64,000 bases of DNA. It comes from Eutreptiella sp. 'Long Island Sound 2002' (Eukaryota; Protista; Euglenida). The position numbers and the translations under genes are program-made. The DNA lies in contig OZ038378.1 in the NCBI GenBank assembly GCA_964036045.1, positions 180,854,001-180,918,000 on the forward strand, given 5' to 3'. Under the pieces are notes generated by a model. The model had not been told where the DNA came from, searched no databases, and worked only from the letters and a program-made list of their open reading frames with translations. The stretch's first letter is position 1. Every line of letters starts with the position of its first letter. Below are positions 1 through 56,309 of the stretch, one piece after another.

Positions 1-2520
1 AAATACTTTGCAGTTTGTGTCCAAGGCCCCTAGCACAATGTAAAGTCACAGGTCAGTGTCGTTCAGGCCGTTGCCCAGTATGGGGGAGTGAGTAGCTCTG
101 AGAATGAGGGTTCCTACTGAGTTGCCCAAAGGGGTTGGGTGGGTCCTATGAGACCCAGCCACCCCCACCCCTGTGCCCAACACCCCCCTGTGCTTGTTCC
201 CCCCAACCCCACTGCCTCTGCCTCTATGTCCCAGCCCCACCACCCCTGTGCCCAACACTGTGCTTGTAGCCCCACCCCCACTGCCTCTGCCTCTTCACAA
301 GGTGTCATCTATTCAGAGCATGCCAGCTGCTCATGTTTCAAAGGACCTGAGGGCAAGGCAGTGAGGGTGAAGCCCATAGGAAACTGGGGTGGACAAGCAA
401 ACTGGCACAACACAACTGTCACAACCATTTGGTTTAGGGAGAACATGGTGCAGAAAAGCATTGCTGAGCACATCAGAATTTGTGTGTAATCGTGTTCATG
501 TTTGGCTTGCTATGCCTTACCACATTGGCCTTGAGGTAACACTTGAAGGTGTAGAAAGTGCCTCACATGTTTTGAGTGGTCACACCATCTAACAATTGTG
601 ACTCAGTGTATCCCATCCTTGATGAAGAGACCACATTTTTTGTACATGGTGGTCCAAGCTACACCACCTGGCAGTGGCAACTTTTCCAACACTACTCTGA
701 ACTTCTGTTGGAAGCAAAGGACTCTCCTGAGCTCATGTTGCAATACAAAATGGCCGACAATTCAATCCCAGTACGATTCCCAAATGTGAAGGGTCTGAAA
801 TGCCATCCTCATTCGTGCGCAAAGGTAACGGGAGACAGCGGAGAAAAATTGCAACCCGTGCTCAACACTATGGCCATGTATCAATCGTCCACCATATCTT
901 GCTACTTTTATGTGGCATGGAAGGTCCTGCTGGCCATGTCGCAGTGTTTTCCACTAAACAGCATTTTTTCCATCTGGATGTTACCATTTGTTGCAAGGGT
1001 TTCTCTTGATCCGTCTGCTATCATCAACTTCACTTTGCATGCTTCCTGGTATTATGGCACTGTGCATGTGCTTTGTCTTTTGATTGACCACCAATTGTGC
1101 AGTGGCTTCAAATGCAAGGCAGTCCCAGGGAGGGGTGGGGGGGGGGGGCGCCCCGCCAGCGCCCTATTCTCCTCAGATGATCTGTTGGACACCACCAGTC
1201 GCTTACCCTTGCCCTTTCCTAAATTTGCTTTGATAGGCCCCTAATCTTTGATCGTGGCCTCCTGGCGACATGTGCTTTGTGCATGCTTCGGAGTCCAGGG
1301 CAAGTTCCACAAAAGGAGTTCCTCCTTGCGGTCTCATTGGTCGGAACGGTAACCCCAACCTGAGCCAGGGTGTAGTCGGTTGGCATGGTTGCTCATTGCG
1401 CATTTGCTTTTTGGTCTGCCATTGAAACTGGTAGTAGCGGTGGTACATGGGCCATGGTGAAATAAACCATAGTCGGGGATGGATGCTAAGGTAGCTTTGT
1501 TGTTGGACCTACGGGAAATAACATACACATGCAGGCGAACAAGCAGGCTGAATGAGAACGGAATATCGATATGCAGTTCTGTGCGACAGATGTGCACATA
1601 TGCATAGCCTCGCAAAGGCGTTATAATGGAAACCTCCTCAACATGGGAGGATAGAGTGTTATGGCACATAAAATTGTCCGACTGACATAAACAAGGGCAG
1701 ACAAAAGTACCCGGCACAGGCAGGGGGTGCATGTGTGTGTGCATGGCCAGATGTGATGATGTGATGCGAAGCTGGTGGTTCATGCCATATGATATGAAGA
1801 TCTTGGATTCAGGCTTTCGGAATTGCACTGCACGCTCGTGCACCAACATCTTGTACAGGATAGACTCGCTCCAAAAAAACCTAGAATCACAACCTTCACG
1901 TGCAATGACGAGGTGGAACCTGCCCCACGTCTGTCCTCCGTACCGCTGGCATGTCTTTGGGTGGTAGCACTGTACCAGGAGGCAACGGTTGATGGGCAGT
2001 CGCAGGGGCTGGTTCGTGGCAAGAACAAAGCAGCACAAGCCGCAGGGCGAATCGATATTGGTATTGGTGTACTGGTACCACCCCTGACCAATCATGAAAC
2101 AAACAAACAGGGCACATACAGAGACTGCCACACGTCAGTGCACAGGGCTTGTGGCAGGTGGGATGGGAGGACCACGAGGAGCGGGTCTCCTGGATGGGGG
2201 TCCCTTGCTGGAACCTCAGTGATGGGTCCAGGTGTGTGTGTATGAGGGCGGGAGTGCTCCCCTGATGGCTGCGGACTGCAAACCGGTTGCGTCTCGCTGC
2301 CACTTCAGAACTGGCCCTGAATCGTCGATCTATCTGCACTCACTGCCTGTACAGGTCATGTCACAAATCAGATGCATGGCGCTCCGTTTGTGCATGGTTC
2401 ATAGGATAGCCACACATCTCCTAAACTGGTTGGCTGGATGATGAAAACCAGCCTCGCTTCATGCCGTTCGTCATACCCATTTACATGGGCACAACGCAAC
2501 ACCAACGGGTTGGTTCGTGG

Positions 2521-3864
2521 TTAATCCTTTCCCAGCAGCTGTGCCAGGGTGGTAACCCCGAAGCGCTGCGGGGCATTGGTTTCCTTGACGTCCTTGCCCA
2601 CCAATTTGCCTTTCACAACGTACTCCTTGCCCATGTGGGTCTGCGCCCAGGACATCACCATGTCCATGACGGGGGTGTCGTAGCCGACAATGTCAGCAAT
2701 GCCCTTGTAGATGCAGAGACCCAAGGGGATGTCTTCCGTAAAGTAGCGGTTCTTGAAGTCGGGCACCCAGCCACCACCCTCCTCCTTCAATGGGGAGCGG
2801 AAGCCCTTGTAGCAAGGGGCGGTGGCAAAGAAGGTCTTTGTACTTGTAAGGTCCGGCTTGTCATCCTCGTAGACCCATCCGAGGAAGTCTTTGATGTGCG
2901 GGATCTTGAGGTCCACACCCGACTGCTCCTTGATGGTCTCTCCGATCATCTGCAGCTCCAAATTGACAGCGTCCATCAGTCCAGCGCTGGCCTCATCAAT
3001 GGCCTCATAGAATAGAGGATTCTCCGGCAGTGTTTTACCCGGGCGCCACTTGTCGCAGATGCGGAACACGCGCTGGGGATGGATGATGGCATTGATGGGG
3101 TACATTGTGGCTGCCAACAAGTGGGCCAGGGGTTCGGAGCTCGCCTGGAACATGCACGCCGTGATCTCGCAGCACTCCGCAGTCTTTGTGGGTGGCAGGG
3201 CTCCCACGCGGTACTTCTTCTTAAGGACCTGCACATGCACCTGCTTCCCAAAATCCGTGATACGGCAGTTCAGGGGCATGGGCATGACGGCAAAGAAGAT
3301 CAGTTCCTTCATCTTTGGCCCTAGCACCTCACGAGCCACCCAGTCAAAGCCGCCCTGGCCGGGGGTTATGCCCACGTATGTACCGGGCTTCACGTGGTCT
3401 TTGAGGTCCTTAAGTACGCTGGGATACGCAAACGAGGGCAGTGGCATGATCAGCACATTGCACTCCGGCACCACCTCTGCAGGGTCCTTGGAGATCTTAT
3501 CAGGCTTGCCCATAGTGATGGTGTCGTCTGACCAGTGGACCTTCATGCCGCCCTGCTCATTGATCCCCTTTCGGATCCTCTCCGCCTCGTCACCGAACCC
3601 GCACCACATATTGCACGGGATCCCGAACGAGGGCAGGATGCAGGCGAAGGCCTGGGCGGCGTTCCCACCACCAACAATGCACACCTTTTTGATCAAGGGG
3701 CTAATGGGAACCTTGGGCCTTTCATGCATAGCCTTCTTGGCCATCCAGTCATGCAAATATGGCAGAGCTGCTGCCGGTTGATCCTTCACAAGGCCTGTGA
3801 TCATGTCGTTGATCAACTGTGGTACGTTGTGCTGGACCAAATAGCTGAGGTCTTCGGTACTCAT
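2521..3864 (-). CDS. odh: D/D (RIIa-like) domain + NAD-dependent opine dehydrogenase (octopine/tauropine DH family), copy 1, 447 aa
   Basis: Starts MSTEDLSYLVQHNVPQLINDMITGLVKDQP..ALPYLHDWM (PKA-R D/D pattern). Then Rossmann motif VCIVGGGNAA, PLPSFAY, PGQGGF, AIIHP and RYFTEDIPLGL, the conserved Gln/His/Arg/Asp motifs of opine dehydrogenases. ATG at 3864 is preceded by a pyrimidine tract and CACACAG acceptor. The ORF-track extension to 4005 runs through a (GT)n microsatellite that is frameshifted in copy 5, so it is non-coding. Confidence 0.93.
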   Translation of the reverse strand: MSTEDLSYLVQHNVPQLINDMITGLVKDQPAAALPYLHDWMAKKAMHERPKVPISPLIKKVCIVGGGNAAQAFACILPSFGIPCNMWCGFGDEAERIRKGINEQGGMKVHWSDDTITMGKPDKISKDPAEVVPECNVLIMPLPSFAYPSVLKDLKDHVKPGTYVGITPGQGGFDWVAREVLGPKMKELIFFAVMPMPLNCRITDFGKQVHVQVLKKKYRVGALPPTKTAECCEITACMFQASSEPLAHLLAATMYPINAIIHPQRVFRICDKWRPGKTLPENPLFYEAIDEASAGLMDAVNLELQMIGETIKEQSGVDLKIPHIKDFLGWVYEDDKPDLTSTKTFFATAPCYKGFRSPLKEEGGGWVPDFKNRYFTEDIPLGLCIYKGIADIVGYDTPVMDMVMSWAQTHMGKEYVVKGKLVGKDVKETNAPQRFGVTTLAQLLGKD

Positions 3865-3885
3865 GGTGACAAGATCAAAAATAGC

Positions 3886-3962
3886 CTGTGTGCAGTGGTA
3901 CATAAAAAATTCAGATTGACATACACGAGGGGAGACAACAGGAGATGGCACAGGCAGGGGTT
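3886..3962 (-). promoter_or_regulatory. Putative SL trans-splice (or 3' splice) acceptor of odh copy 1, same in all copies
   Basis: Minus strand reads cccctgcctgtgccatctcctgttgtctcccctc...tttttatgtaccactgcacacAG|gctatttttgatcttgtcaccATG, with the AG 21 nt upstream of the ATG. Confidence 0.65.
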
Positions 3963-4337: not shown

Positions 4338-4518
4338 TCTCCCTCCATCTCCCTACCATCTCCCTACCATCTCCCTGCCATCTCCCTACACTTCCCTTCA
4401 TCTCCTTCATCTACTTCCAGTATACTTCATCACTCAGCCATCTCCCTTCATCTTTGTGCATCTCTGTGGATCTCTCTACATCTCCCTACATCTCCTTACC
4501 ATCTGCCTACATCTCCAC
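4338..4518. repeat. CT-rich (ATCTCCCTAC-like) microsatellite; copies near 11490, 18105, 26140 and 31968
   Basis: Degenerate CCATCTCCCTAC units with copy-number differences between array units. Confidence 0.85.
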
Positions 4519-5320
4519 TATAACGGAGAATGTATTCCTAAAGTCCATGGGGGGGGTAGGAGATATGCCTCCAAATGCAAAACTGTACTAACGATCCAGG
4601 CCGTTGTTTGATTCTGCAGATGAGTTGCGGTGGGGCTTTTTTTGGTTGGCTTTTTTGGGGGGGTGGATTTTTTTTTTGAAAATGTGGGTTCCTTGTCAGG
4701 GACCCTCACTCACCCAACCGTCAGCATACACTGTGGGTCTGCTGGCTGGGTCCCATACTGCTGGTGCCAGGGGCGCAGGAAGAGAATGTTTCTTTTGATT
4801 TTCCTTGTGTTGGTCAGTCAGACAGCTAGTGGGTCTCTCTGGGCACGCACCGTGCGCCGTGTGAAATTTTGGACACGTTTTCTCCGCTCGCCTAGGGAGC
4901 TGTAGACCTGGCAGTGCTTTCCACCAAACTGTTTAACACAGATGAAATGTAAATTCAGCCCTTGTGCCCAGAGGAGGGCATGCAGAGATCCAAGTTGGCT
5001 GAAGTGATTGGGACAGTGGGCAGAAGCCCTGCTGTTCAAGAGCAGAGAGTTATCAACAGCTCCACCACAGTGCTTATGGTAACAGAGGAATCACAGATCT
5101 TTGGCTGCCTGCAAAACTTGTGTCCCGATGGGCCACTGGGTGATGTGTGTTTGCAATGTTGGGTGATAACTTGGCGACTTGGAATTCTTCAGCAGCACCA
5201 TTGGGGCTCCTGTGATGGGCTCTCATGCTTTCCTCATTGCCCTCTCACCAACAGTAGCAGCTAGTGGCAGCTGAGTACGTGTCAATATGATCAACATCCA
5301 CGGCTGAAATTGCGAAAAAC

Positions 5321-6942
5321 ATGTCGTGTTCTCAGAATTATCCAATGTCCAAAACAATGCAATGTAGACAATGAAATTGTCTTGCAGGTGTTACTCCTTG
5401 ATACCCGTAGCCTCGGAATCCAAGTCCACGTTGATATATGAACGGATGAATTGAACGAAAGGAGTCCGGAAAAAAATAGACACTCAGAAAGTGGAGTGAT
5501 GGACTCCTTCCCCGATCGTCAGGCAGCGGCGAAGGGTACATACACGCAAGAAGGGGGAGGGTTGATGCTACAAGGATACACAATGGCAATAGTACCCTGC
5601 GGCAATCCTACACCCAAAAAACTGCCTACCGGTGGTGGAGAATGGCCTACTTTTCGCACAGCGCGCGCACAGCGCACGGTACGCCCCCCAATAGGGGGGG
5701 GGGGGGGGGCAACCGGTGGTACCTAGAGATAGAGCCCGGGAGCCCCACCATTGGTTATGGGGTTCATTGACAAGAAAAAAGTGGAATGGGACCTGCTTCC
5801 CGTATTGACAGCACCGCGCACTGCACCGCGCGCACCGCGTGCGTCAGAGGATGCAACGCTTTAGTGCAATGTACACCCTTTCAGAAGGTAGGAGAAAATA
5901 CATTGAAATGGGAAACTTTTGTGCATGCATTATCACCACTTCCCCCAGATTCTGCCCCCAAAGCGTGTTTTACCCGTACACACCAATAGCATCACCTAAC
6001 CATTGCATACAATGCACACTGGCCAAGTTTCAGCAACTTTTAGTGTGAGCATATATTGTGTGCGCCGGGCTGACATCGCACCGCGCGCTGCACTGCGCGC
6101 ACCGCGGGGGCACCCTCATTGATAAGTATCGGCCCACCCAAGTTTTGCCCACCATGGTGCAAATAGGCCCAAAACGGTGCTACTTGGGGCCAACAGGCAG
6201 CACTAGGAGGGCCCCATCTGTGCTCCATAGCTCCCCATGTGTTTATATGTCGTTCCATTGTCACCACATGATTACCCAAGCCTGGACCAAGTGTTCCAGG
6301 CGGTCGCCATGGGTCACCAAAATAGCGCATTTTTCAGCCAACCAATCCGGGGCAATTTCAAGCAAAAACGGTGATTTTGTGTCTTCCAAAGGAGCGATGA
6401 GCAGCCCAAGACAGAGCTACAACAAGGAACAACAACGAGGCTGCAATAAACATCCCTTTACATTCTAGCATTGATAAACTGTCAGAACACCCCAAGTCCC
6501 ACCCCTCCAGGGGGATACCACATGGTCATTAAAACCGCCAAAACTGCCAACATAAGAAAAATGATTGTAAACTGCATAAACTACATTAGCGCTCACCCAC
6601 ACCGCCTAGAAACAAAGCCATGGAGTTGGGCCCAAGGCCAAGTTCTTGCACTGGGTGCGCACTGCGTGCATATTGCGCACGCAGAGGTAGGGATACTCAC
6701 TCAAGAATACCTGTCACCTATCTAGTACCACGGCGAAGCAACAAAGCCCACATGAGAACAACGAAACTGCCTTCAACTTGGCAATCAACTGTCATTATGA
6801 ACAAGCCACTCAGCCTTGTAGAATACAACTATGCAAGGGCATGCAAGATGCACACATGTTCAAGTGGCAAGTGCCACACTCCGATACATTAACAGGACAG
6901 TGGCCACACAATTGGCAACAAAACACCGTCAGGAAGGCCCCG
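5321..6942. other. 1.6-kb foreign segment replacing ~170 bp of spacer 1; contains the SL relic and GCAC/GCGC-rich repeat fragments
   Basis: Spacers 2-4 read ...gcgaaaaac taagcgttc...ccac tggaaacacaagg, whereas spacer 1 reads ...gcgaaaaac atgtcgtg...ccccg tggaaaacacaagg. No TSD. Confidence 0.85.
5467..5492 (-). other. Euglenid spliced-leader exon sequence, as a genomic relic rather than an SL RNA gene
   Basis: Minus strand ACTTTCTGAGTGTCTATTTTTTTCCG, one base different from the Euglena SL as I recall it (ACTTTCTGAGTGTCTATTTTTTTTCG). It is followed by GACTCC, not the GT donor expected in an SL RNA gene. Confidence 0.85.
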
Positions 6943-7614: not shown

Positions 7615-8248
7615 TTGGAGGGTCTCTAGGGAGGGTCCGGGTTGCCCGTGAGGGTCTTGCGGGAAGTTGTGAGTCTTTCTAGATGGTCTCTGCGGAGGGT
7701 CTTCCTAGAGGGTCTCTGAGTAGGGTCTCTGTGGAGGGTCTCCATAGAGGGTCTCTGAGGAGGGTCTCTGTGGAGGGTCTCTGTGGAGGGTCTCTCGAGA
7801 GGTCTCCCTAGGATCTGCTTGGAGGATCTCTGCAGAGAGTCTCCCTAGAGGGCCTCCCATGGGGTTCCCCTGGGAGGGTGTCTTGGAGGGGTCTCTGTAG
7901 AGGAGCTCATGGGAGGGTCACCTAGAGGGTCTCCAAGGAGGGTCCGGGTCTCCTGGGAGGTTGTGAGTCTCCCAAGATGGTCTCCATGGAGGGTCACTGT
8001 GGAGGGTCTCCATGGAGGGTCCACTTGGAGGGTCTCTCGGGAGGTCTCCTGAGAGAATCTCCTTGGAGGATCTCCGCAGAGGTTCTCCTTGAAGGGTCTC
8101 CCTGCAGGCTCCCGGGAGGGTCCAGGTCGCCTGCGAGGGTATCCTGGGAGGTTGTGAGTCTCCCTCAATGGTCTCCCTAGATGGTCTTGATAGATGGTCT
8201 CTGTGGAGGGTCTCCTTAGAGGGTCTCTTGGGAGGTCTCCCTGGAGGA
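7615..8248. repeat. G-rich GGAGGGTCTC-type satellite, spacer 1
   Basis: Dozens of degenerate GGAGGGTCTC / GGAGGATCTC units with strong G skew. Confidence 0.9.
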
Positions 8249-9671: not shown

Positions 9672-11015
9672 TTAATCCTTTCCCAGCAGCTGTGCCAGGG
9701 TGGTAACCCCGAAGCGCTGCGGGGCATTGGTTTCCTTGACGTCCTTGCCCACCAATTTGCCTTTCACAACGTACTCCTTGCCCATGTGGGTCTGCGCCCA
9801 GGACATCACCATGTCCATGACGGGGGTGTCGTAGCCGACAATGTCAGCAATGCCCTTGTAGATGCAGAGACCCAAGGGGATGTCTTCCGTAAAGTAGCGG
9901 TTCTTGAAGTCGGGCACCCAGCCACCACCCTCCTCCTTCAATGGGGAGCGGAAGCCCTTGTAGCAAGGGGCGGTGGCAAAGAAGGTCTTTGTACTTGTAA
10001 GGTCCGGCTTGTCATCCTCGTAGACCCATCCGAGGAAGTCTTTGATGTGCGGGATCTTGAGGTCCACACCCGACTGCTCCTTGATGGTCTCTCCGATCAT
10101 CTGCAGCTCCAAATTGACAGCGTCCATCAGTCCAGCGCTGGCCTCATCAATGGCCTCATAGAATAGAGGATTCTCCGGCAGTGTTTTACCCGGGCGCCAC
10201 TTGTCGCAGATGCGGAACACGCGCTGGGGATGGATGATGGCATTGATGGGGTACATTGTGGCTGCCAACAAGTGGGCCAGGGGTTCGGAGCTCGCCTGGA
10301 ACATGCACGCCGTGATCTCGCAGCACTCCGCAGTCTTTGTGGGTGGCAGGGCTCCCACGCGGTACTTCTTCTTAAGGACCTGCACATGCACCTGCTTCCC
10401 AAAATCCGTGATACGGCAGTTCAGGGGCATGGGCATGACGGCAAAGAAGATCAGTTCCTTCATCTTTGGCCCTAGCACCTCACGAGCCACCCAGTCAAAG
10501 CCGCCCTGGCCGGGGGTTATGCCCACGTATGTACCGGGCTTCACGTGGTCTTTGAGGTCCTTAAGTACGCTGGGATACGCAAACGAGGGCAGTGGCATGA
10601 TCAGCACATTGCACTCCGGCACCACCTCTGCAGGGTCCTTGGAGATCTTATCAGGCTTGCCCATAGTGATGGTGTCGTCTGACCAGTGGACCTTCATGCC
10701 GCCCTGCTCATTGATCCCCTTTCGGATCCTCTCCGCCTCGTCACCGAACCCGCACCACATATTGCACGGGATCCCGAACGAGGGCAGGATGCAGGCGAAG
10801 GCCTGGGCGGCGTTCCCACCACCAACAATGCACACCTTTTTGATCAAGGGGCTAATGGGAACCTTGGGCCTTTCATGCATAGCCTTCTTGGCCATCCAGT
10901 CATGCAAATATGGCAGAGCTGCTGCCGGTTGATCCTTCACAAGGCCTGTGATCATGTCGTTGATCAACTGTGGTACGTTGTGCTGGACCAAATAGCTGAG
11001 GTCTTCGGTACTCAT
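9672..11015 (-). CDS. odh: D/D-opine dehydrogenase fusion, copy 2
   Basis: Translation identical to copy 1; CAT at 11013-11015. Confidence 0.93.
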   Translation of the reverse strand: MSTEDLSYLVQHNVPQLINDMITGLVKDQPAAALPYLHDWMAKKAMHERPKVPISPLIKKVCIVGGGNAAQAFACILPSFGIPCNMWCGFGDEAERIRKGINEQGGMKVHWSDDTITMGKPDKISKDPAEVVPECNVLIMPLPSFAYPSVLKDLKDHVKPGTYVGITPGQGGFDWVAREVLGPKMKELIFFAVMPMPLNCRITDFGKQVHVQVLKKKYRVGALPPTKTAECCEITACMFQASSEPLAHLLAATMYPINAIIHPQRVFRICDKWRPGKTLPENPLFYEAIDEASAGLMDAVNLELQMIGETIKEQSGVDLKIPHIKDFLGWVYEDDKPDLTSTKTFFATAPCYKGFRSPLKEEGGGWVPDFKNRYFTEDIPLGLCIYKGIADIVGYDTPVMDMVMSWAQTHMGKEYVVKGKLVGKDVKETNAPQRFGVTTLAQLLGKD

Positions 11016-16287: not shown

Positions 16288-17631
16288 TTAATCCTTTCCC
16301 AGCAGCTGTGCCAGGGTGGTAACCCCGAAGCGCTGCGGGGCATTGGTTTCCTTGACGTCCTTGCCCACCAATTTGCCTTTCACAACGTACTCCTTGCCCA
16401 TGTGGGTCTGCGCCCAGGACATCACCATGTCCATGACGGGGGTGTCGTAGCCGACAATGTCAGCAATGCCCTTGTAGATGCAGAGACCCAAGGGGATGTC
16501 TTCCGTAAAGTAGCGGTTCTTGAAGTCGGGCACCCAGCCACCACCCTCCTCCTTCAATGGGGAGCGGAAGCCCTTGTAGCAAGGGGCGGTGGCAAAGAAG
16601 GTCTTTGTACTTGTAAGGTCCGGCTTGTCATCCTCGTAGACCCATCCGAGGAAGTCTTTGATGTGCGGGATCTTGAGGTCCACACCCGACTGCTCCTTGA
16701 TGGTCTCTCCGATCATCTGCAGCTCCAAATTGACAGCGTCCATCAGTCCAGCGCTGGCCTCATCAATGGCCTCATAGAATAGAGGATTCTCCGGCAGTGT
16801 TTTACCCGGGCGCCACTTGTCGCAGATGCGGAACACGCGCTGGGGATGGATGATGGCATTGATGGGGTACATTGTGGCTGCCAACAAGTGGGCCAGGGGT
16901 TCGGAGCTCGCCTGGAACATGCACGCCGTGATCTCGCAGCACTCCGCAGTCTTTGTGGGTGGCAGGGCTCCCACGCGGTACTTCTTCTTAAGGACCTGCA
17001 CATGCACCTGCTTCCCAAAATCCGTGATACGGCAGTTCAGGGGCATGGGCATGACGGCAAAGAAGATCAGTTCCTTCATCTTTGGCCCTAGCACCTCACG
17101 AGCCACCCAGTCAAAGCCGCCCTGGCCGGGGGTTATGCCCACGTATGTACCGGGCTTCACGTGGTCTTTGAGGTCCTTAAGTACGCTGGGATACGCAAAC
17201 GAGGGCAGTGGCATGATCAGCACATTGCACTCCGGCACCACCTCTGCAGGGTCCTTGGAGATCTTATCAGGCTTGCCCATAGTGATGGTGTCGTCTGACC
17301 AGTGGACCTTCATGCCGCCCTGCTCATTGATCCCCTTTCGGATCCTCTCCGCCTCGTCACCGAACCCGCACCACATATTGCACGGGATCCCGAACGAGGG
17401 CAGGATGCAGGCGAAGGCCTGGGCGGCGTTCCCACCACCAACAATGCACACCTTTTTGATCAAGGGGCTAATGGGAACCTTGGGCCTTTCATGCATAGCC
17501 TTCTTGGCCATCCAGTCATGCAAATATGGCAGAGCTGCTGCCGGTTGATCCTTCACAAGGCCTGTGATCATGTCGTTGATCAACTGTGGTACGTTGTGCT
17601 GGACCAAATAGCTGAGGTCTTCGGTACTCAT
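16288..17631 (-). CDS. odh: D/D-opine dehydrogenase fusion, copy 3
   Basis: Translation identical to copy 1; CAT at 17629-17631. Confidence 0.93.
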   Translation of the reverse strand: MSTEDLSYLVQHNVPQLINDMITGLVKDQPAAALPYLHDWMAKKAMHERPKVPISPLIKKVCIVGGGNAAQAFACILPSFGIPCNMWCGFGDEAERIRKGINEQGGMKVHWSDDTITMGKPDKISKDPAEVVPECNVLIMPLPSFAYPSVLKDLKDHVKPGTYVGITPGQGGFDWVAREVLGPKMKELIFFAVMPMPLNCRITDFGKQVHVQVLKKKYRVGALPPTKTAECCEITACMFQASSEPLAHLLAATMYPINAIIHPQRVFRICDKWRPGKTLPENPLFYEAIDEASAGLMDAVNLELQMIGETIKEQSGVDLKIPHIKDFLGWVYEDDKPDLTSTKTFFATAPCYKGFRSPLKEEGGGWVPDFKNRYFTEDIPLGLCIYKGIADIVGYDTPVMDMVMSWAQTHMGKEYVVKGKLVGKDVKETNAPQRFGVTTLAQLLGKD

Positions 17632-20121
17632 GGTGACAAGATCAAAAATAGCCTGTGTGCAGTGGTACATAAAAAATTCAGATTGACATACACGAGGGGA
17701 GACAACAGGAGATGGCACAGGCAGGGGTTGCATGTGTGTGTATGTGTGTGTGTGTTCATGGGCCAAACCCAAATTTGCTTATGGCAAACATCAATTTGTT
17801 TCTGTGGGGGAGGCGCTCAATACCCTTTTTGGCTTCTGTCTGTATGACGGCCGCTGGTCTTTCATAAGCTACTTGTGCCACTTTCCCTTTTTGATTCTTT
17901 GTACCTATGTTCATATCTCAGATGTGGATGCAGTGGTCATTGTGAGAGAGTCCAAAGGATTTATTGCATAGGATATGTCTCTCGTGACGGTGCATGCATA
18001 TCATGGTCCAGCTTGTGACCTAAATGCCACACAGCAGGAGCAAAACATATGGTGACACCCTGAAAGCTAGCTTGCATCCCAACAATCTGGTAAGATCCGG
18101 AAATTTCCCCCTCCCTACCATCTCCCTGCCATCTCCCTACACTTCCCTTCATCTCCTTCATCTACTTCCAGTATACTTCATCACTCAGCCATCTCCCTTC
18201 ATCTTTGTGCATCTCTGTGGATCTCTCTACATCTCCCTACATCTCCTTGCCATCTGCCTACATCTCCACTATAACGGAGAATGTATTCCTAAAGTCCATG
18301 GGGGGTAGGAGATATGCCTCCAAATGCAAAACTGTGCTAACAATTCACGCCATGACGTGAGAGGCCAATGAGGAAAGCATGAGAGCCCATCACAGGAGCC
18401 CCAATGGTGCTGCTGAAGAATTGCAAGTCGCCAAGTTATCACCCAACATTGCAAACACGGATCACCCAGCGGCCCATCGGGACACAAGTTTTGCAGGCAG
18501 CCAAAGATCTGTGATTCCTCTGTTACCATAAGCACTGTGGTGGAGCTGTTGATAACTCTCTGCTCTTGAACAGCAGGGCTTCTGCCCACTGTCCCAATCA
18601 CTTCAGCCAACTTGGATCTCTGCGTGCCCTCCTCTGGGCACAAGGGCTGAATTTACATTTCATCTGTGTTAAACAGTTTGGTGGAAAGCACTGCCAGGTC
18701 TACAGCTCCCTAGGCGAAGGGAGAAAACGTGTCCAAAATTTCACACAGCGCACGGTGCGTGCCCAGAGAGACCCACTAGCTGACTAACTGACCAACACAA
18801 GGAAAATCAAAAGAAACATTCTCTTCCTGCGCCCCTGGCACCAGAAGTATGGGACCCAGCCAGCAGACCCACAGTGTATGCTGACGGTTGGGTGAGTGGG
18901 GGTCCCTGACAAGGAACCCACACTTTTCAAAAAAAAAATCCACCCCCCAAAAAAGCCAACCAAAAAAAGCCCCACCGCAACTCGTCTGCAGAATCAAACA
19001 ACGGCCTGGGCCTGATGATGTACCCATAGAGAGCAAAGTGAAACAGATGTAATTGCCCAATCCGCCCATTGCCCAACTACCATGGGAGCACAACTATGTG
19101 TCCCCACAGTGCCACAGGGCTCATGTGATGGACCAGTAGTCAGCACCACACTCTAATGGTCCCAGAATCTTGGCAAGCACAGCACTGCCCTGTGACCGTT
19201 GGAAATCGACAACAGTAGCAGCTAGTAGCAGCTGAGTACGTGTCAATATGATCAACATCCACGGCTGAAATTGCGAAAAACTAAGCGTTCTGCATGGCAC
19301 AGGGTACAGCATAATGACTTGCATACAATAAATTCACAGCAATTCACCAATAATACCAGCTTGCCCAACCAGACAGACACACGGAAGAACCTCACCATCC
19401 AACCCGGTAATGAAAATTGGAACACTCAAAGTTGGTGGTATCCCTGCCACTGGAAACACAAGGGTGGGTGTTTCTCAAGGGGGAAGGAGGGTACACTAAC
19501 ACTGGTTCTCCATGCCCTTTAGATGCCACTGCATTTTGTTCAATAACTTGTGTATGCTGTGCCATATGCCATGGCCAGGTTGCATTTGGCCCATGCCCAT
19601 CGTACCTGATTGCCCAGTTACACTTCCCACCACCCATGAAGGCTGGTGTTTGCCTAATGACCTGCTGAAAAATGTCCTTCACAATGTTGCATATTTGTTC
19701 TACCTCATCCAGGTGTCGCAGCACCTGTTGACACTGCCGGTGCCACATTTGGGATCGCCGACTGCGTTAGTCTGAGAGCAAAATTGCACGTTCACTGACC
19801 TTTGTGTTTCTCCACAAAGGTGATCACTGTTTCACATTCCACTGGACAGGGACCAACACAGGGCTAACTGCATTCAGAGCAAGAGTTGCAGTGAACAGGG
19901 AGGCAGGCTCCTGCCGTCTCGGCAGCCATGGAATGGGGAAGACTCAAGAAGGCTACACAACACGCTACCCAAAGCAGGAAAGACTCAACATGGTAAAACC
20001 CTACCATCTTAGGTTTTGTACTGCAAGGAGGACTGAAATTTGCCATAAACCTACCCAATTTTGCACAAGGTGCCCATTTCTGTACCCCCCCACTCAGGGT
20101 TTTTCTTAACCACAGGGTCAC

Positions 20122-22140: not shown

Positions 22141-23484
22141 TTAATCCTTTCCCAGCAGCTGTGCCAGGGTGGTAACCCCGAAGCGCTGCGGGGCATTGGT
22201 TTCCTTGACGTCCTTGCCCACCAATTTGCCTTTCACAACGTACTCCTTGCCCATGTGGGTCTGCGCCCAGGACATCACCATGTCCATGACGGGGGTGTCG
22301 TAGCCGACAATGTCAGCAATGCCCTTGTAGATGCAGAGACCCAAGGGGATGTCTTCCGTAAAGTAGCGGTTCTTGAAGTCGGGCACCCAGCCACCACCCT
22401 CCTCCTTCAATGGGGAGCGGAAGCCCTTGTAGCAAGGGGCGGTGGCAAAGAAGGTCTTTGTACTTGTAAGGTCCGGCTTGTCATCCTCGTAGACCCATCC
22501 GAGGAAGTCTTTGATGTGCGGGATCTTGAGGTCCACACCCGACTGCTCCTTGATGGTCTCTCCGATCATCTGCAGCTCCAAATTGACAGCGTCCATCAGT
22601 CCAGCGCTGGCCTCATCAATGGCCTCATAGAATAGAGGATTCTCCGGCAGTGTTTTACCCGGGCGCCACTTGTCGCAGATGCGGAACACGCGCTGGGGAT
22701 GGATGATGGCATTGATGGGGTACATTGTGGCTGCCAACAAGTGGGCCAGGGGTTCGGAGCTCGCCTGGAACATGCACGCCGTGATCTCGCAGCACTCCGC
22801 AGTCTTTGTGGGTGGCAGGGCTCCCACGCGGTACTTCTTCTTAAGGACCTGCACATGCACCTGCTTCCCAAAATCCGTGATACGGCAGTTCAGGGGCATG
22901 GGCATGACGGCAAAGAAGATCAGTTCCTTCATCTTTGGCCCTAGCACCTCACGAGCCACCCAGTCAAAGCCGCCCTGGCCGGGGGTTATGCCCACGTATG
23001 TACCGGGCTTCACGTGGTCTTTGAGGTCCTTAAGTACGCTGGGATACGCAAACGAGGGCAGTGGCATGATCAGCACATTGCACTCCGGCACCACCTCTGC
23101 AGGGTCCTTGGAGATCTTATCAGGCTTGCCCATAGTGATGGTGTCGTCTGACCAGTGGACCTTCATGCCGCCCTGCTCATTGATCCCCTTTCGGATCCTC
23201 TCCGCCTCGTCGCCGAACCCGCACCACATATTGCACGGGATCCCGAACGAGGGCAGGATGCAGGCGAAGGCCTGGGCGGCGTTCCCACCACCAACAATGC
23301 ACACCTTTTTGATCAAGGGGCTAATGGGAACCTTGGGCCTTTCATGCATAGCCTTCTTGGCCATCCAGTCATGCAAATATGGCAGAGCTGCTGCCGGTTG
23401 ATCCTTCACAAGGCCTGTGATCATGTCGTTGATCAACTGTGGTACGTTGTGCTGGACCAAATAGCTGAGGTCTTCGGTACTCAT
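22141..23484 (-). CDS. odh: D/D-opine dehydrogenase fusion, copy 4
   Basis: Translation identical; one synonymous change seen near 23212 (GGT to GGC, Gly). Confidence 0.93.
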   Translation of the reverse strand: MSTEDLSYLVQHNVPQLINDMITGLVKDQPAAALPYLHDWMAKKAMHERPKVPISPLIKKVCIVGGGNAAQAFACILPSFGIPCNMWCGFGDEAERIRKGINEQGGMKVHWSDDTITMGKPDKISKDPAEVVPECNVLIMPLPSFAYPSVLKDLKDHVKPGTYVGITPGQGGFDWVAREVLGPKMKELIFFAVMPMPLNCRITDFGKQVHVQVLKKKYRVGALPPTKTAECCEITACMFQASSEPLAHLLAATMYPINAIIHPQRVFRICDKWRPGKTLPENPLFYEAIDEASAGLMDAVNLELQMIGETIKEQSGVDLKIPHIKDFLGWVYEDDKPDLTSTKTFFATAPCYKGFRSPLKEEGGGWVPDFKNRYFTEDIPLGLCIYKGIADIVGYDTPVMDMVMSWAQTHMGKEYVVKGKLVGKDVKETNAPQRFGVTTLAQLLGKD

Positions 23485-24510: not shown

Positions 24511-27500
24511 GATCTGGTACCCCCTTCTCAGGGGCAGAATGAAAATTTTGCTTACAAATATTGTCCCCCAAAAAGGCCAACCCACTCTTGGCCTACCCCC
24601 ATCGGGGGGGGGGGGGGTTGGGTTGGGTTGGGCTGGCGGCCTCATGCAGGAGCAGGCCCTCGGGTGTGGGCTTCCTTCCCTGCCCCACCACGAGGCTGAA
24701 CAACCTGACTGTCCGGTTCCAAGGCCGAGCGGACTATCGACAGCCACCAGACCCCACCGAAGCGCAGGTGGGCGGAAGATGCCGTCGTCCTGTGTGTAGG
24801 CGCGCGCGCGGGCAGGGGTGTGGGCGGGGGCTGGGCCTTGCGTGTGGGGGGCAAGTGTGGCCTGGTGCTCCAGGCCCGGTGGGGCAGGCCATGGGAGCCC
24901 GACGCTGAGCCCACCGGGGAGTAGTGGGCCAGGGCATCGCATCCTCCTGGTCACAGAGACACGCTGCCCGCCCGTCCCACGACTGCGTACGCACGGAGAC
25001 GGGTGTGCGCCGGGCACGACTGGGGGGGACCCGCGCTCCTTGACTGCCTGTTGGCACAGGTGGCGCTGCTGTACTAGCTGGGTCCCGCACTCCCACGGCC
25101 TGGGGCGCTGGTGGCAGGTGGAGGGGTCCCTGGGCGCGCTGAGTGCTTCCCTGCCCTGGGACCTTCCCGTTAGTCCTAGGGGCCCGTAGGGCACACCACC
25201 GGACTGGCCCCTCCAAGGGAAGGGGGGGGTAGGGGGCAGGGGTCGGCAGGTGGCTGTCTGGCCTCCAGGGGTCGCCCACAACTGCACTGCAGTGCACGGG
25301 GCTGTGCTGGCCTAGGCGTCTGTGATGAGGTTGGAGGGGCGCGTGCACACCTGGAGGTTCCCTGGGCAGGTCGCCCTAGGGATGCCCACAGCGGTCAAGC
25401 TGTGAGCCCTTCACAGCCTCCACTTTTCAGGCCCTGAGGGCGCCGACTCCGTGCACCCCTCCCGTCGGGGGCGCAGGCTGGGGGGGTTGAGTGGTGGATG
25501 GGTCTACCTGTCCGTTCATTGGCCCATGGTGTTCACTTGTTTGGGAGAGGAGGACCACCTGCTGGGTTACCATGCGGGTCCCAGATCCCGACATACTCGT
25601 CATTCAGCGTCCGCCCCTTTTCCGCGAGGGGAGGGACCTCGTTCACCATGTGCCGGCCTGCAGTGAGGGTGCGAGGGCATGCTGGGGGCGAGGGGGCGGG
25701 TCTCCTTTTGGTCCCGCCCCATTTCTGTTGGGGGGGGGGGGTAGGGGCAGCAAAAAGTCTGCTCCCCAGTTTCCTGGTCCCCAAGGGGAACCAGCCCACG
25801 GCCTGCACCCTCGCTTTGTGGTGGCTGAAATTTGGGCCCACTGAGTGGGGGGGGGGGGGAGGGTGTTTCTGCTGAGGGCACCCAGAATTTCCAAAAAGGC
25901 AGGCAGGCACCCCCAACCCTGGGGGAGGGTGTGCGCGCCACTAAAAAAAGGCTTGATGTGGATGCAGTGGTCATTGTGAGAGAGTCCAAAGGATTTTTTG
26001 CATAGGATATGTCTCTAGTGATGGTGCATGCATATCATGGTCCAGCTTGTGACCTAAATGCCACACAGCGGGAGCAAAACATATGGTGACACCCTGAAAG
26101 CTAGCTTGCATCCCAACAATCTGGTAAGATCCGGAAATTCTCCCTCCATCTCCCTACCATCTCCCTACACTTCCCTTCATCTCCTTCATCTACTTCCAGT
26201 ATACTTCATCACTCAGCCATCTCCCTTCATCTTTGTGCATCTCTGTGGATCTCTCTACATCTCCCTACATCTCCTTACCATCTGCCTACATCTCCACTAT
26301 AACGGAGAACGTATTCCTAAAGTCCATGGGGGGTAGGAGATATGCCTCCAAATGCAAAACTGTGCTAACAATTCACGCCATGACGTGAGAGGCCAATGAG
26401 GAAAGCATGAGAGCCCATCACAGGAGCCCCAATGGTGCTGCTGAAGAATTGCAAGTCGCCAAGTTATCACCCAACATTGCAAACACGCATCACCCAGTGG
26501 CCCATCCGGACACAAGTTTTGCAGGCAGCCAAAGATCTGTGATTCCTCTGTTACCATAAGCACTGTGGTGGAGCTGTTGATAACTCTCTGCTCTTGAACA
26601 GCAGGGCTTCTGCCCACTGTCCCAATCACTTCAGCCAACTTGGATCTCTGCATGCCCTCCTCTGGGCACAAGGGCTGAATTTACATTTCATCTGTGTTAA
26701 ACAGTTTGGTGGAAAGCACTGCCAGGTCTACAGCTCCCTAGGCGAAGGGAGAAAACGTGTCCAAAATTTCACACAGCGCACGGTGCGTGCCCAGAGAGAC
26801 CCACTAGCTGACTAACTGACCAACACAAGGAAAATCAAAAGAAACATTCTCTTCCTGCGCCCCTGGCACCAGAAGTATGGGACCCAGCCAGCAGACCCAC
26901 AGTGTATGCTGACGGTTGGGTGAGTGGGGGTCCCTGACAAGGAACCCACACTTTTCAAAAAAAAAATCCACCCCCCAAAAAAGCCAACCAAAAAAAGCCC
27001 CACCGCAACTCGTCTGCAGAATCAAACAACGGCCTGGGCCTGATGATGTACCCATAGAGAGCAAAGTGAAACAGATGTAATTGCCCAATCCGCCCATTGC
27101 CCAACTACCATGGGAGCACAACTATGTGTCCCCACAGTGCCACAGGGCTCATGTGATGGACCAGTAGTCAGCACCACACTCTAATGGTCCCAGAATCTTG
27201 GCAAGCACAGCACTGCCCTCTGACCGTTGGAAATCGACAACAGTAGCAGCTAGTAGCAGCTGAGTACGTGTCAATATGATCAACATCCACGGCTGAAATT
27301 GCGAAAAACTAAGCGTTCTGCATGGCACAGGGTACAGCATAATGACTTGCATACAATAAATTCACAGCAATTCACCAATAATACCAGCTTGCCCAACCAG
27401 ACAGACACACGGAAGAACCTCACCATCCAACCCGGTAATGAAAATTGGAACACTCAAAGTTGGTGGTATCCCTGCCACTGGAAACACAAGGGTGGGTGTT

Positions 27501-30147: not shown

Positions 30148-31491
30148 TTAATCCTTTCCCAGCAGCTGTGCCAGGGTGGTAACCCCGAAGCGCTGCGGGG
30201 CATTGGTTTCCTTGACGTCCTTGCCCACCAATTTGCCTTTCACAACGTACTCCTTGCCCATGTGGGTCTGCGCCCAGGACATCACCATGTCCATGACGGG
30301 GGTGTCGTAGCCGACAATGTCAGCAATGCCCTTGTAGATGCAGAGACCCAAGGGGATGTCTTCCGTAAAGTAGCGGTTCTTGAAGTCGGGCACCCAGCCA
30401 CCACCCTCCTCCTTCAATGGGGAGCGGAAGCCCTTGTAGCAAGGGGCGGTGGCAAAGAAGGTCTTTGTACTTGTAAGGTCCGGCTTGTCATCCTCGTAGA
30501 CCCATCCGAGGAAGTCTTTGATGTGCGGGATCTTGAGGTCCACACCCGACTGCTCCTTGATGGTCTCTCCGATCATCTGCAGCTCCAAATTGACAGCGTC
30601 CATCAGTCCAGCGCTGGCCTCATCAATGGCCTCATAGAATAGAGGATTCTCCGGCAGTGTTTTACCCGGGCGCCACTTGTCGCAGATGCGGAACACGCGC
30701 TGGGGATGGATGATGGCATTGATGGGGTACATTGTGGCTGCCAACAAGTGGGCCAGGGGTTCGGAGCTCGCCTGGAACATGCACGCCGTGATCTCGCAGC
30801 ACTCCGCAGTCTTTGTGGGTGGCAGGGCTCCCACGCGGTACTTCTTCTTAAGGACCTGCACATGCACCTGCTTCCCAAAATCCGTGATACGGCAGTTCAG
30901 GGGCATGGGCATGACGGCAAAGAAGATCAGTTCCTTCATCTTTGGCCCTAGCACCTCACGAGCCACCCAGTCAAAGCCGCCCTGGCCGGGGGTTATGCCC
31001 ACGTATGTACCGGGCTTCACGTGGTCTTTGAGGTCCTTAAGTACGCTGGGATACGCAAACGAGGGCAGTGGCATGATCAGCACATTGCACTCCGGCACCA
31101 CCTCTGCAGGGTCCTTGGAGATCTTATCAGGCTTGCCCATAGTGATGGTGTCGTCTGACCAGTGGACCTTCATGCCGCCCTGCTCATTGATCCCCTTTCG
31201 GATCCTCTCCGCCTCGTCACCGAACCCGCACCACATATTGCACGGGATCCCGAACGAGGGCAGGATGCAGGCGAAGGCCTGGGCGGCGTTCCCACCACCA
31301 ACAATGCACACCTTTTTGATCAAGGGGCTAATGGGAACCTTGGGCCTTTCATGCATAGCCTTCTTGGCCATCCAGTCATGCAAATATGGCAGAGCTGCTG
31401 CCGGTTGATCCTTCACAAGGCCTGTGATCATGTCGTTGATCAACTGTGGTACGTTGTGCTGGACCAAATAGCTGAGGTCTTCGGTACTCAT
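30148..31491 (-). CDS. odh: D/D-opine dehydrogenase fusion, copy 5
   Basis: Translation identical from MSTEDL; the upstream (GT)n tract has one extra unit. Confidence 0.93.
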   Translation of the reverse strand: MSTEDLSYLVQHNVPQLINDMITGLVKDQPAAALPYLHDWMAKKAMHERPKVPISPLIKKVCIVGGGNAAQAFACILPSFGIPCNMWCGFGDEAERIRKGINEQGGMKVHWSDDTITMGKPDKISKDPAEVVPECNVLIMPLPSFAYPSVLKDLKDHVKPGTYVGITPGQGGFDWVAREVLGPKMKELIFFAVMPMPLNCRITDFGKQVHVQVLKKKYRVGALPPTKTAECCEITACMFQASSEPLAHLLAATMYPINAIIHPQRVFRICDKWRPGKTLPENPLFYEAIDEASAGLMDAVNLELQMIGETIKEQSGVDLKIPHIKDFLGWVYEDDKPDLTSTKTFFATAPCYKGFRSPLKEEGGGWVPDFKNRYFTEDIPLGLCIYKGIADIVGYDTPVMDMVMSWAQTHMGKEYVVKGKLVGKDVKETNAPQRFGVTTLAQLLGKD

Positions 31492-54105: not shown

Positions 54106-54436
54106 TCACAGGGGCGACGAATTGGTCCCGCCGTCCTTGTTCCGAGGCAGGCACACGCCCATGAGCCCCGCCAGAGTGCCCACGGGCCCCGCGTGGCCCT
54201 CCTGCGCATCGTAGGACCGCAGCCAGTTCTGCGCCAGGCCGTACCGCAAGGCGTCCTCCTCCGCCTCCCCCCCCTCCTCATCAAGCTCAGGACCGTCCGT
54301 CCCGAAACCACCGGAGGCCCGGAGCTCGGCATCGAGGGTCCGCATGTACTCCCGCATTTGGGCCGAGACCGCCGTCGCCTGGTCCTCCTCGTCGCTCTCC
54401 CCGGAGTCAGAGCCCTCCGGCGGCGCAGCCCCGGCG

Positions 54437-54469
<33 letters not shown>

Positions 54470-55328
54470 GCCCCGGCGCCCATGGCAAACAACCGCCGCC
54501 GGGCCCGGGCACGCTCCTGCGAAGACAGACTCTTAGTCACCGCCGGTCGACCGGACTCCAGACCATCGCTGCTCCGGTCCGCCCCTGCCCCTGCCCCTGC
54601 CCCTGCCCCTGCCCCTGCCCCCGCCTCAACCCCCGCCGCATCCACCGCCGCTGCAGCGGTCGCCCGAGGGGCGGCGACAGAGGCAGCCTCGTCGGCCAAT
54701 GCCGCCCTCGGCGCAGGGCCGTGCGGGGCCCACGGTGTCTCTACGCCCTCCAAGTCCGACTGTCGCGTCATGAGGCTCTCAACGCCATCGACAAGGGCCG
54801 AGACGTGCACCGCCTGCGCCGCGGCCTCGCCGTCCTCGTCCTCCGAGGGATAGTGCCGCCGCAGCTCCGCGTCGAGGCCCTCCGGCGAGAGGTAGAGCCA
54901 CTTGTCCGAGTCCTCGGCGAAGGTCCGGAAGTCGCGCTGGCACAACTCCGCGGGGCAGTCGGTCAAGATGCGTTGCACTTGTTCGGAGAAGTTGCGGTAG
55001 CGGTCCTGGAGTGTCAGCGGCGGTGCAGCGGCGGGTGGAACAGCGGTCGAATCCGGGGCCGCGCCCTCCGCATCCGAACGCACGTGGGAAGCGGCCCCGG
55101 CACCCGCATCCCGCCGCTGCAAAGCCTCGGCTTTGATGCGCAGGAACTGCTCCTTCGCCTTGCGCTCCTGCTCGCGATAGACCACACTGCCCTCCAACTC
55201 GTCCCGGAAGTACCCCAGGCTCTTCAATTTGGCCACGTACCGCGCCCACTGCCGGTCGGACTCGAAGTCGTACAGATCCGCGGCTGCCGACGCACCCGCA
55301 TTCCCGTCGTCACAGCGCCCCGGCTCTG
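54106..55328 (-). CDS. ECD: Ecdysoneless (ECD), exon 2
   Basis: W..Y..KLKSLGYFRDELEGS, DSDKWLYLSPEGLD, MREYMRTLDAEL and NWLRSYDAQEGHAGPVGTLAGLMGVCLP. Acceptor ccgcAG at 55330-55329 with upstream CTGAC is phase-compatible with the exon 1 donor. Confidence 0.88.
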
Positions 55329-56309
55329 CTGCGGTGCGGGGCGTAGGGTCAGTGGAGGGGCACGGGCCAAATGGCGGCCTCGATGGCGTCAGACCTGAAC
55401 CAGTGCAGAGGCCGCAAATGCAAGAGGCGGTGATGAGCGAAGCAGAGGAGAGGGCTGGCAGCACTGGGCAATGTGTTTGAGCGGTTGATGAAACCTGCGT
55501 AAAGAATCTTTGCACGGGCCCTTAATCAATGAATTCATTAATAATGGTGCGTGGGGCCAGCGGTGTCCTTCAATGCACTGCCACACGATTACATCCCCGG
55601 TCCTGCAGGTTTCGTCCAGGGAGGCATCCCGGTCCGCTGGTTGCCAGCCCACCCGCATTCCTGGAACACACCCACCGGGCCGACCAGAGCCCCTGCACCA
55701 TAGCGTCGGGCAGAAGGCGGGCATGTGCGGGCCATTAGTACAAGGCGCCAGGCAGGGGGGCAGGGGGGGGGGGGGGGGCAGACCGAAAGATATGGCAAAG
55801 CACGATCGCTGCAAGTGGTCACTCCGCGCATCAGGATTGTATTGTGGGTATTGTAGAGAGCGATCAATTCATCATGCGCTGCATTACCCGGGAACAACAT
55901 GCCAAGCAATGTCCAACTTGCATACTGGGTCTGCTTTCAGCAGTTCGGGCGAAACACAAACTGCGAATCGTGCAACTGCAATGAACCAACTCAGCAAGCA
56001 AAGCCCCAACGTCTATGCTACAGTGCGTGCTCGCTGCGTGTTGGTGGTTGACAGGTGTGTGACTGACAGAATGAACAGGGGGATCCAAGGCAAAACTTTT
56101 GGGGGGCGGCATGGTTGGGCGTGAGAGTCGACAGGAGACATAGAGAGGACGGCCTGAAGATGAGAGCATTGGGGGCAGGGGAGAGGAGTGAGGTTAAGGA
56201 GTGGGGGCAAAGGCGAGGGCGAAGGCGAGGAAGAGGCACGGGGCCAGAAGCAGAGGGAGATGGCGAAGGAGAGGGCGATGGCAAAAGACGTGGGAGCATG
56301 AGGCGATAC
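55329..56309 (-). other. 981-nt GT-AG intron of ECD
   Basis: G|GTATCG donor, CTGAC branch-like motif and tandem CAGCAG acceptor; the joined frame reads SA-A-EPGRCDD. Confidence 0.7.

Follow-up and report, generated by a model that had tools for sequence, protein, structure and literature searches.

A predicted docking-domain tag on a tandemly encoded opine dehydrogenase of the euglenid Eutreptiella: a candidate scaffold-anchored enzyme for NAD+ regeneration

Dimerization/docking (D/D) domains form dimers, in the groove of which an amphipathic helix can be bound. In the RI-alpha subunit of PKA (PDB 2EZW, 3IM4, 5HVZ) such a domain precedes cAMP-binding domains, and modules of the same RIIa/Dpy-30 clan are also found on housekeeping enzymes, such as the enolase of the Chlamydomonas central apparatus (7N6G), AK8, AK7 and NME5/RSP23, all of which have been seen docked in axonemal complexes. 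In solved axonemal structures, D/D domains hold proteins such as NME5, AK8 and enolase in place within radial spokes or the central apparatus (PMC8339350; PMC3494852), and a survey of the D/D superfamily classed enolase, AK5 and AK8 as RI-type (PMC8339350). None of these axonemal enzymes is a terminal NAD+-regenerating dehydrogenase. Among opine dehydrogenases (OpDH), the octopine dehydrogenase (OcDH) of Pecten (PDB 3C7A/3C7C/3C7D, 3IQD) is an animal muscle enzyme without an N-terminal D/D domain. Within the Euglenozoa, a role in NAD+ regeneration has been suggested for the OPDH of Diplonema papillatum, which is reported to share the address of glycolysis, there through a glycosomal targeting signal and not through a D/D domain (PMC8611851). 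Here we analyze a gene of Eutreptiella sp. 'Long Island Sound 2002' in a stretch of 64,000 nucleotides (hereafter the window; assembly GCA_964036045.1, contig OZ038378.1, positions 180,854,001 to 180,918,000), the product of which joins a predicted RI-type D/D domain to an OpDH. D/D-tagged metabolic enzymes are already established; an OpDH carrying a D/D domain is a new architecture. We consider it moderately probable, by analogy with the axonemal enzymes, that this protein is a scaffold-anchored, NAD+-regenerating OpDH isoform, most likely a flagellar one. The features of the first gene copy are as follows.

2521 to 3864, minus strand: gene for the D/D-OpDH, copy 1 (open reading frame and translation: 447 codons plus stop, no intron)
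3724 to 3864, minus strand: predicted RI-type D/D domain, residues 1-47 (PDB profile matches, AlphaFold2 model, Foldseek and VIA-align)
3691 to 3723, minus strand: linker HERPKVPISPL, residues 48-58, basic and proline-rich, conserved in three orthologues
2524 to 3690, minus strand: OpDH body, residues 59-447, Rossmann domain plus Octopine_DH helical domain
3865 to 3888, minus strand: trans-splice acceptor and 21-nt 5' untranslated region (contig departure at 3886 and sequence context)
2203 to 2520, minus strand: 3' untranslated region, at least its first 318 nt (transcript contigs, which continue further)

The gene is expressed, intronless and trans-spliced to a spliced leader. The transcript evidence consists of contigs assembled from RNA runs, which begin at 2203, 2248 or 3430 and follow copy 1 without a gap or mismatch up to 3886. 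Past this last position the contigs of runs X1, X3 and X8 read into the reverse complement of CTGAGTGTCTATTTCTTTTC, the core of the euglenid spliced leader; as the leader itself ends in G, the acceptor is placed at the AG at 3887-3886. The genomic part of the 5' untranslated region is then 21 nt long (3885 to 3865) and contains no other ATG, so that translation begins at MSTEDLSY, from the ATG at 3864, which no AUG precedes in the mature mRNA. The longer open reading frame that would start with a TTG (4005) is not used, the spliced leader being joined downstream of that TTG. Two of the runs with the transcript are estuary metatranscriptomes, indicating that the gene is expressed in nature. The euglenid origin proposed earlier for the gene agrees with the spliced leader on the transcript and with the fact that its best relatives are from Eutreptiella.

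Sequence profiles and a predicted fold place residues 1-47 among the D/D domains of the RIIa/Dpy-30 clan, nearest to the RI type, and the resemblance goes beyond chance. Pfam being silent on this N-terminus, the assignment needed profiles from relatives. As a single sequence compared with the PDB (177,635 sequences), the N-terminus had as first match the Dpy-30 domain of NME5 (E 0.068) and as second the D/D domain of PKA RI-alpha (E 0.22); a word-indexed search with residues 1-58 only returned the query alone. The profile of three orthologues matched RI-alpha at 5e-4, NME5 at 1.9e-3, FAP385 at 3.1e-3 and DPY30 at 3.3e-3, the top 16 PDB matches being all D/D domains, and it found 45 proteins at E <=1e-3 among 1.84 billion representative proteins. 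From the domains found with this profile a 30-member alignment was built, with which the PDB matches reached 1.5e-9 for RI-alpha, 3.9e-8 for FAP385, 5.9e-5 for NME5 and 9.5e-5 for DPY30; EFCAB10, AK8 and the Chlamydomonas central-apparatus enolase (residues 3-45, E 0.008) were matched as well. Pfam Dpy-30 recognizes 15 of these 30 family members and RIIa nine, at E up to 0.1, and one orthologue of the window protein matches Dpy-30 at E 0.001, under the cut-off. Besides, with a leave-out profile made from the 26 members that are not OpDH, the window protein scored 69.8 bits, while the highest score among 2000 shuffled N-termini was 14.6 and untagged paralogues had no score.

The AlphaFold2 model obtained with the 30-member alignment has helices at residues 3-11, 14-28 and 33-47 (pLDDT 88.5), that is, a helix-turn-helix with an extra N-terminal helix. 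When the model was compared with known structures by Foldseek, D/D complexes of RI-alpha came first (TM 0.78/0.82, rmsd 1.1 A) and D/D domains made up 18 of the 19 matches; the E-values for this 52-residue model are not significant alone (best 0.11), and the structural match draws its weight from the ranking and the TM scores, together with the sequence profiles. VIA-align gave a Z of 7.8 with RI-alpha over all 49 chain residues, 5.9 with RII-alpha and 4.8 with DPY30. The hallmark of the RI type is a proline on either side of the loop that joins helices I and II (PMC8339350). P30 is invariant in 30 of 30 members, and the second proline is at residue 35 in the window protein, displaced by two residues with respect to RI-alpha, with the RI spacing found in one orthologue (P0002). 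RI-alpha is thus the best match by profile and by predicted structure, sharing the extra N-terminal helix and the proline-flanked loop. It differs in that its D/D domain is attached to cAMP-binding domains instead of a dehydrogenase, and in its two disulfide cysteines, absent here. The linker that follows has low pLDDT in the full-length model.

The body of the protein is a complete and presumably active OpDH, with its catalytic residues intact. Pfam PF02317 (Octopine_DH) matches residues 246-410 with 101.3 bits, over a cut-off of 30, and residues 59-444 align with Pecten maximus OcDH (PDB 3c7a, E 8e-61), which has the same two-domain fold. The motifs GGGNAA (residues 65-70), PGQGG (168-172), IIHP (260-263) and RYFTED (373-378) are all present. 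The Rossmann dinucleotide motif GxGxxA/G reads VGGGNAAQA (64-72), in which G65, G67, N68 and A69 are invariant over a 21-sequence alignment. In the alignment with 3c7a, Pecten Gln118, His212, Arg324 and Asp329 correspond to Q170, H262, R373 and D378; of these, all but Q170 are unchanged in each of 84 homologues, and Q170 is invariant in the 21-sequence alignment. The roles of His212 and Arg324 and a His-Asp relay have been described for the Pecten enzyme (PMC2924402). AlphaFold2 models residues 55-447 with a pLDDT of about 97, and of about 98 at the Rossmann motif. The sequence-only reading of this DNA had described a PKA RI-like D/D domain in residues 1-45, joined by a short basic linker to a full OpDH with intact GxGxxA, Gln, His and Arg/Asp motifs. 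All three parts of that description stand: the first on the profile E-values (5e-4 to 1.5e-9), the leave-out score of 69.8 bits and the predicted fold (Z 7.8), the second on residues 48-58, kept among the three orthologues, and the third on the Pfam score that it had proposed to look for and on the 3c7a alignment.

The same whole architecture is found in two more orthologue groups, P0002 and P0003 (the latter from Eutreptiella gymnastica), with 80% identity; an exact look-up of P0003 found no contig. There are also untagged paralogues of 395-396 residues (from Eutreptiella braarudii, P0004/P0179, and P0005) that begin exactly at the end of the linker. A maximum-likelihood tree built from the enzyme bodies groups the nine sequences of the Eutreptiella lineage, tagged and untagged, in one clade (support 100/100), in which a single change accounts for the split between the two kinds. 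A search of the representative library is blind to other OpDH fusions, because its 50% clusters are represented by untagged enzymes, and we therefore scanned 130 OpDH homologues with the leave-out D/D profile. Only orthologues of the Eutreptiella lineage were positive, and the long N-termini of eight other homologues were unrelated to D/D. A tag confined to one clade that also has untagged paralogues looks like the outcome of a lineage-specific duplication followed by the gain or loss of the D/D module. Two side observations concern these relatives. The untagged Eutreptiella paralogue is also found in tandem (L003-L005, ENA ERZ25074135 ctg10013), with copies 4.1-5.2 kb apart. In a relative's contig that does not reach the downstream exon (L006, 1575-1817) a near-identical D/D coding segment is followed, right after ...KAV, by GT and sequence that looks non-coding; this gene may have an intron at the domain boundary, unlike the intronless gene of the window.

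The sequence-only reading knew of no described fusion of this kind, and we found no account of one in the literature searched. The UniRef name of the orthologue, 'Opine dehydrogenase domain-containing protein', mentions the enzyme domain only, and the D/D survey (PMC8339350) lists no OpDH, GAPDH or other dehydrogenase.

By its sequence, the same D/D subtype is also found at the head of GAPDH and of several further euglenid enzymes. A transcript-confirmed GAPDH of Euglena gracilis (P0166, 405 residues; EG_transcript_12332) has it at its N-terminus, a Eutreptiella GAPDH (P0184) is a full-length, transcript-derived protein with the tag, and at a Eutreptiella GAPDH locus (L001) the D/D domain and the start of the Rossmann domain lie in one exon. 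Among the 120 closest relatives listed for P0166, itself tagged, P0184 is the only one with a D/D domain. The tags of OpDH and GAPDH are 46% identical over 43 amino acids, and in both enzymes a short basic linker leads straight to the first Rossmann strand. The two fusions differ in that GAPDH makes NADH and OpDH consumes it, and in that the GAPDH fusion is found in Euglena and Eutreptiella, the OpDH fusion in the Eutreptiella lineage only. As an observation on its origin, the GAPDH body of P0166 and P0184 is about 80% identical to bacterial type I GAPDH (Brevinematales, Fibrobacter, Omnitrophota), which points to a bacterial-type enzyme having gained a eukaryotic docking module. Other proteins headed by the D/D domain are a SnoaL-like protein (Eutreptiella), a DJ-1/PfpI protein (Jenningsia), a protein kinase (Entosiphon), an Arf-like GTPase and a cupin-repeat protein. 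At a further locus of the Eutreptiella assembly (L009) a D/D exon (3501-3833) is followed 1.9 kb downstream, on the same strand, by exons of triosephosphate isomerase (TIM; 5715-6480), and an in-frame GT...CAG join of the D/D exon to IRKFIVGGNWK is possible. We also noted, in ERZ25074135, D/D exons upstream of a Kelch-repeat gene (L002) and of a 5'-nucleotidase/EF-hand gene (L007), on the same strand as these genes, as candidates for further fusions.

In the sperm fibrous sheath, LDH placed beside GAPDHS closes a glycolytic redox loop. The same could be achieved in Eutreptiella by a shared address, since GAPDH makes NADH and OpDH consumes it. In the mechanism that we propose, the OpDH, an NAD(H)-dependent enzyme, would condense pyruvate reductively with an amino acid, regenerating NAD+. 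The D/D domain would bring two enzyme molecules together in an X-type four-helix bundle, and the groove of this bundle would dock on the amphipathic helix of a scaffold similar to A-kinase anchoring proteins (AKAPs). The D/D-GAPDH, and possibly a D/D-tagged triosephosphate isomerase (TPI), would be addressed to the same scaffold, so that NADH from GAPDH would be turned back into NAD+ in place and local glycolytic ATP production kept running. The bulk cytosol would be left to the untagged paralogue. By analogy with enolase, AK7, AK8 and NME5, the likeliest place for the scaffold would be the flagellum (axoneme or paraflagellar rod). The idea of an anchored energy module had already been put forward from the sequence. 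It is indirectly strengthened by finding the same D/D subtype on the NADH-producing GAPDH of Euglena and Eutreptiella, and by the fact that D/D-tagged enolase, AK8 and NME5, present in solved axonemal structures, match the same profile, as do FAP385, DPY30 and EFCAB10 from such structures. A wider version, in which much of the euglenid glycolytic and fermentative pathway would sit on one amphipathic-helix scaffold through a common RI-type tag, probably in the flagellum and with NADH-producing and NADH-consuming dehydrogenases held together, is offered tentatively and strikes us as rather doubtful. Two of its members, GAPDH and OpDH, carry the tag by their sequences, and TPI is a candidate.

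Several points weigh against the proposed explanation. On residues 1-58 of the window protein Pfam has no match at E up to 10, with RIIa (PF02197) and Dpy-30 (PF05186) below the gathering score, so the match to these families anticipated for residues 1-45 did not appear on the protein's own N-terminus. D/D domains also act outside flagella, in PKA itself and as DPY30 in COMPASS, and the tag alone does not specify the flagellum; we infer the flagellar location of the D/D-OpDH, its dimerization and its AKAP binding. The split between tagged and untagged enzymes has a support of only 76/54. Finally, the D/D-TPI fusion at L009 is a candidate only, its D/D and TIM exons lying 1.9 kb apart.

One alternative is that the D/D domain only dimerizes or pairs enzymes, as OpDH dimers or OpDH-GAPDH hetero-complexes, in the cytosol and without any anchor. 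D/D domains are obligate dimerizers and Pecten OcDH lacks one, the OpDH and GAPDH tags are alike (46% over 43 amino acids), and no scaffold partner was identified. However, every solved D/D dimer matched by our profile either is bound to a partner helix or belongs to a larger assembly, as seen with AKAP peptides, the radial spoke, the central apparatus and COMPASS, and a tag carried by functionally unrelated enzymes (kinase, DJ-1, SnoaL, Arf-like) is more easily explained as a common address than as a means of pairing two partners. We consider simple pairing unlikely. Anchoring could also be to a structure other than the flagellum, such as the pellicle microtubules, the region of the eyespot and paraflagellar body, the Golgi or a nuclear complex, given that RI-type D/D domains bind AKAPs at many cell sites and that for some of the tagged proteins (kinase, cupin, DJ-1) a role in the flagellum is not evident. 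This seems to us distinctly unlikely, as most of the PDB matches to the profile outside PKA are axonemal components and the D/D superfamily has been linked to flagellated organisms (PMC8339350).

The identity of the amino acid bears on a third alternative, namely an arginine-using octopine dehydrogenase coupled to phosphoarginine and arginine kinase during burst motility, as the sequence-only reading had envisaged. In its favour, the best solved homologue is the Pecten octopine dehydrogenase. There the side chains of Glu142 and Trp278 bind the guanidinium group (PMC2924402). The tryptophan is kept in the window protein as W330, but the position of Glu142 is occupied by Met194, so that only one of the two side chains expected of an octopine dehydrogenase in the strict sense is present. 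Among the 130 OpDH homologues, the anchoring motif for this position could be located in 122, and 0 of the 122 had E or D there (M in 69, L in 26, V in 15, and others), which argues against arginine as the preferred substrate. Besides, the single OPDH of Diplonema goes with beta-alanopine, tauropine and saccharopine, not with octopine (PMC8611851). The substrate amino acid is thus probably other than arginine; the proposed link to octopine and phosphoarginine is weakened, and we regard this alternative as quite improbable. Lastly, an organelle-targeting presequence (for mitochondrion, plastid or a peroxisome-like compartment), which the N-terminal position of the extension, its absence from the paralogue and the glycosomal signal reported for Diplonema OPDH (PMC8611851) might suggest, is very improbable and was rejected on composition (an acidic start and no hydrophobic signal segment), predicted fold (three helices, pLDDT 88.5) and D/D homology, with a C-terminus (LLGKD) that is not like a type 1 peroxisomal targeting signal (PTS1) either.

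Returning to the locus that encodes the D/D-OpDH, the window contains five minus-strand copies of the gene in tandem, which encode identical proteins and start with the ATGs at 3864, 11015, 17631, 23484 and 31491. Apart from copy 1, described above, they are the following.

9672 to 11015, minus strand: copy 2, coding DNA equal to copy 1 (tblastn and comparison of coding sequences)
16288 to 17631, minus strand: copy 3, coding DNA equal to copy 1
22141 to 23484, minus strand: copy 4, with a single synonymous difference (codon 91, GGT to GGC)
30148 to 31491, minus strand: copy 5, coding DNA equal to copy 1

The array occupies 1382-32229, with unit spacings of 7151, 6616, 5853 and 8007 bp (about 5.9-8.0 kb), and the context of the acceptor and 5' untranslated region is the same in 5 of 5 copies. 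The spacers are 88-99% identical where they can be aligned and are distinguished by insertions and one inverted segment; the coding sequences have 0-1 differences. The copy number is at least five, the coding sequences are homogenised, and the array may extend past the left edge of the window. Such tandem arrays are typical for highly expressed euglenozoan genes, and the combination of tandem amplification and homogenised coding sequences suggests a high demand for the product. In the spacers, a segment of ~650 bp upstream of copy 1 (4596-5248) recurs inverted at 18357-19009 and 26385-27037 with 97-98% identity, and there are minisatellites at 7673-8247 and 4338-4516, one with a 13/26/39-nt period and a GGTCTCTGTGGAG-like unit, the other with a 10-11-nt period and a TCTCCCTCCA-like unit. 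Outside the array, at 54109-57408 on the minus strand, the Pfam family SGT1 (PF07093) is matched by two neighbouring open reading frames, one for its N-terminal and one for its C-terminal part (E 3.9e-79 and 2.9e-22), and they are probably a single SGT1/ecdysoneless-like gene split by an intron.

With these fusions the D/D superfamily gains two enzyme classes, OpDH and GAPDH. Current Pfam thresholds miss this D/D subtype, and for this reason such fusions stay unannotated; the euglenid profile provides a search signature for the whole set of tagged enzymes and for the scaffold. Within the Euglenozoa there is a contrast in how the OpDH is addressed, with a glycosomal signal reported in Diplonema (PMC8611851) and a D/D tag in Eutreptiella. 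If a pathway were indeed held on a scaffold, it would be a counterpart of the glycosome of kinetoplastids and diplonemids and of the glycolysis of the mammalian sperm fibrous sheath. The supply of ATP along long flagella and the balance of NAD+/NADH far from mitochondria are understood from few known cases (the sperm fibrous sheath, the central-pair enolase of Chlamydomonas and the flagellar kinases of trypanosomes), and a common tag on GAPDH and on a terminal NAD+-regenerating dehydrogenase makes a hypothesis of this kind directly testable in euglenids.

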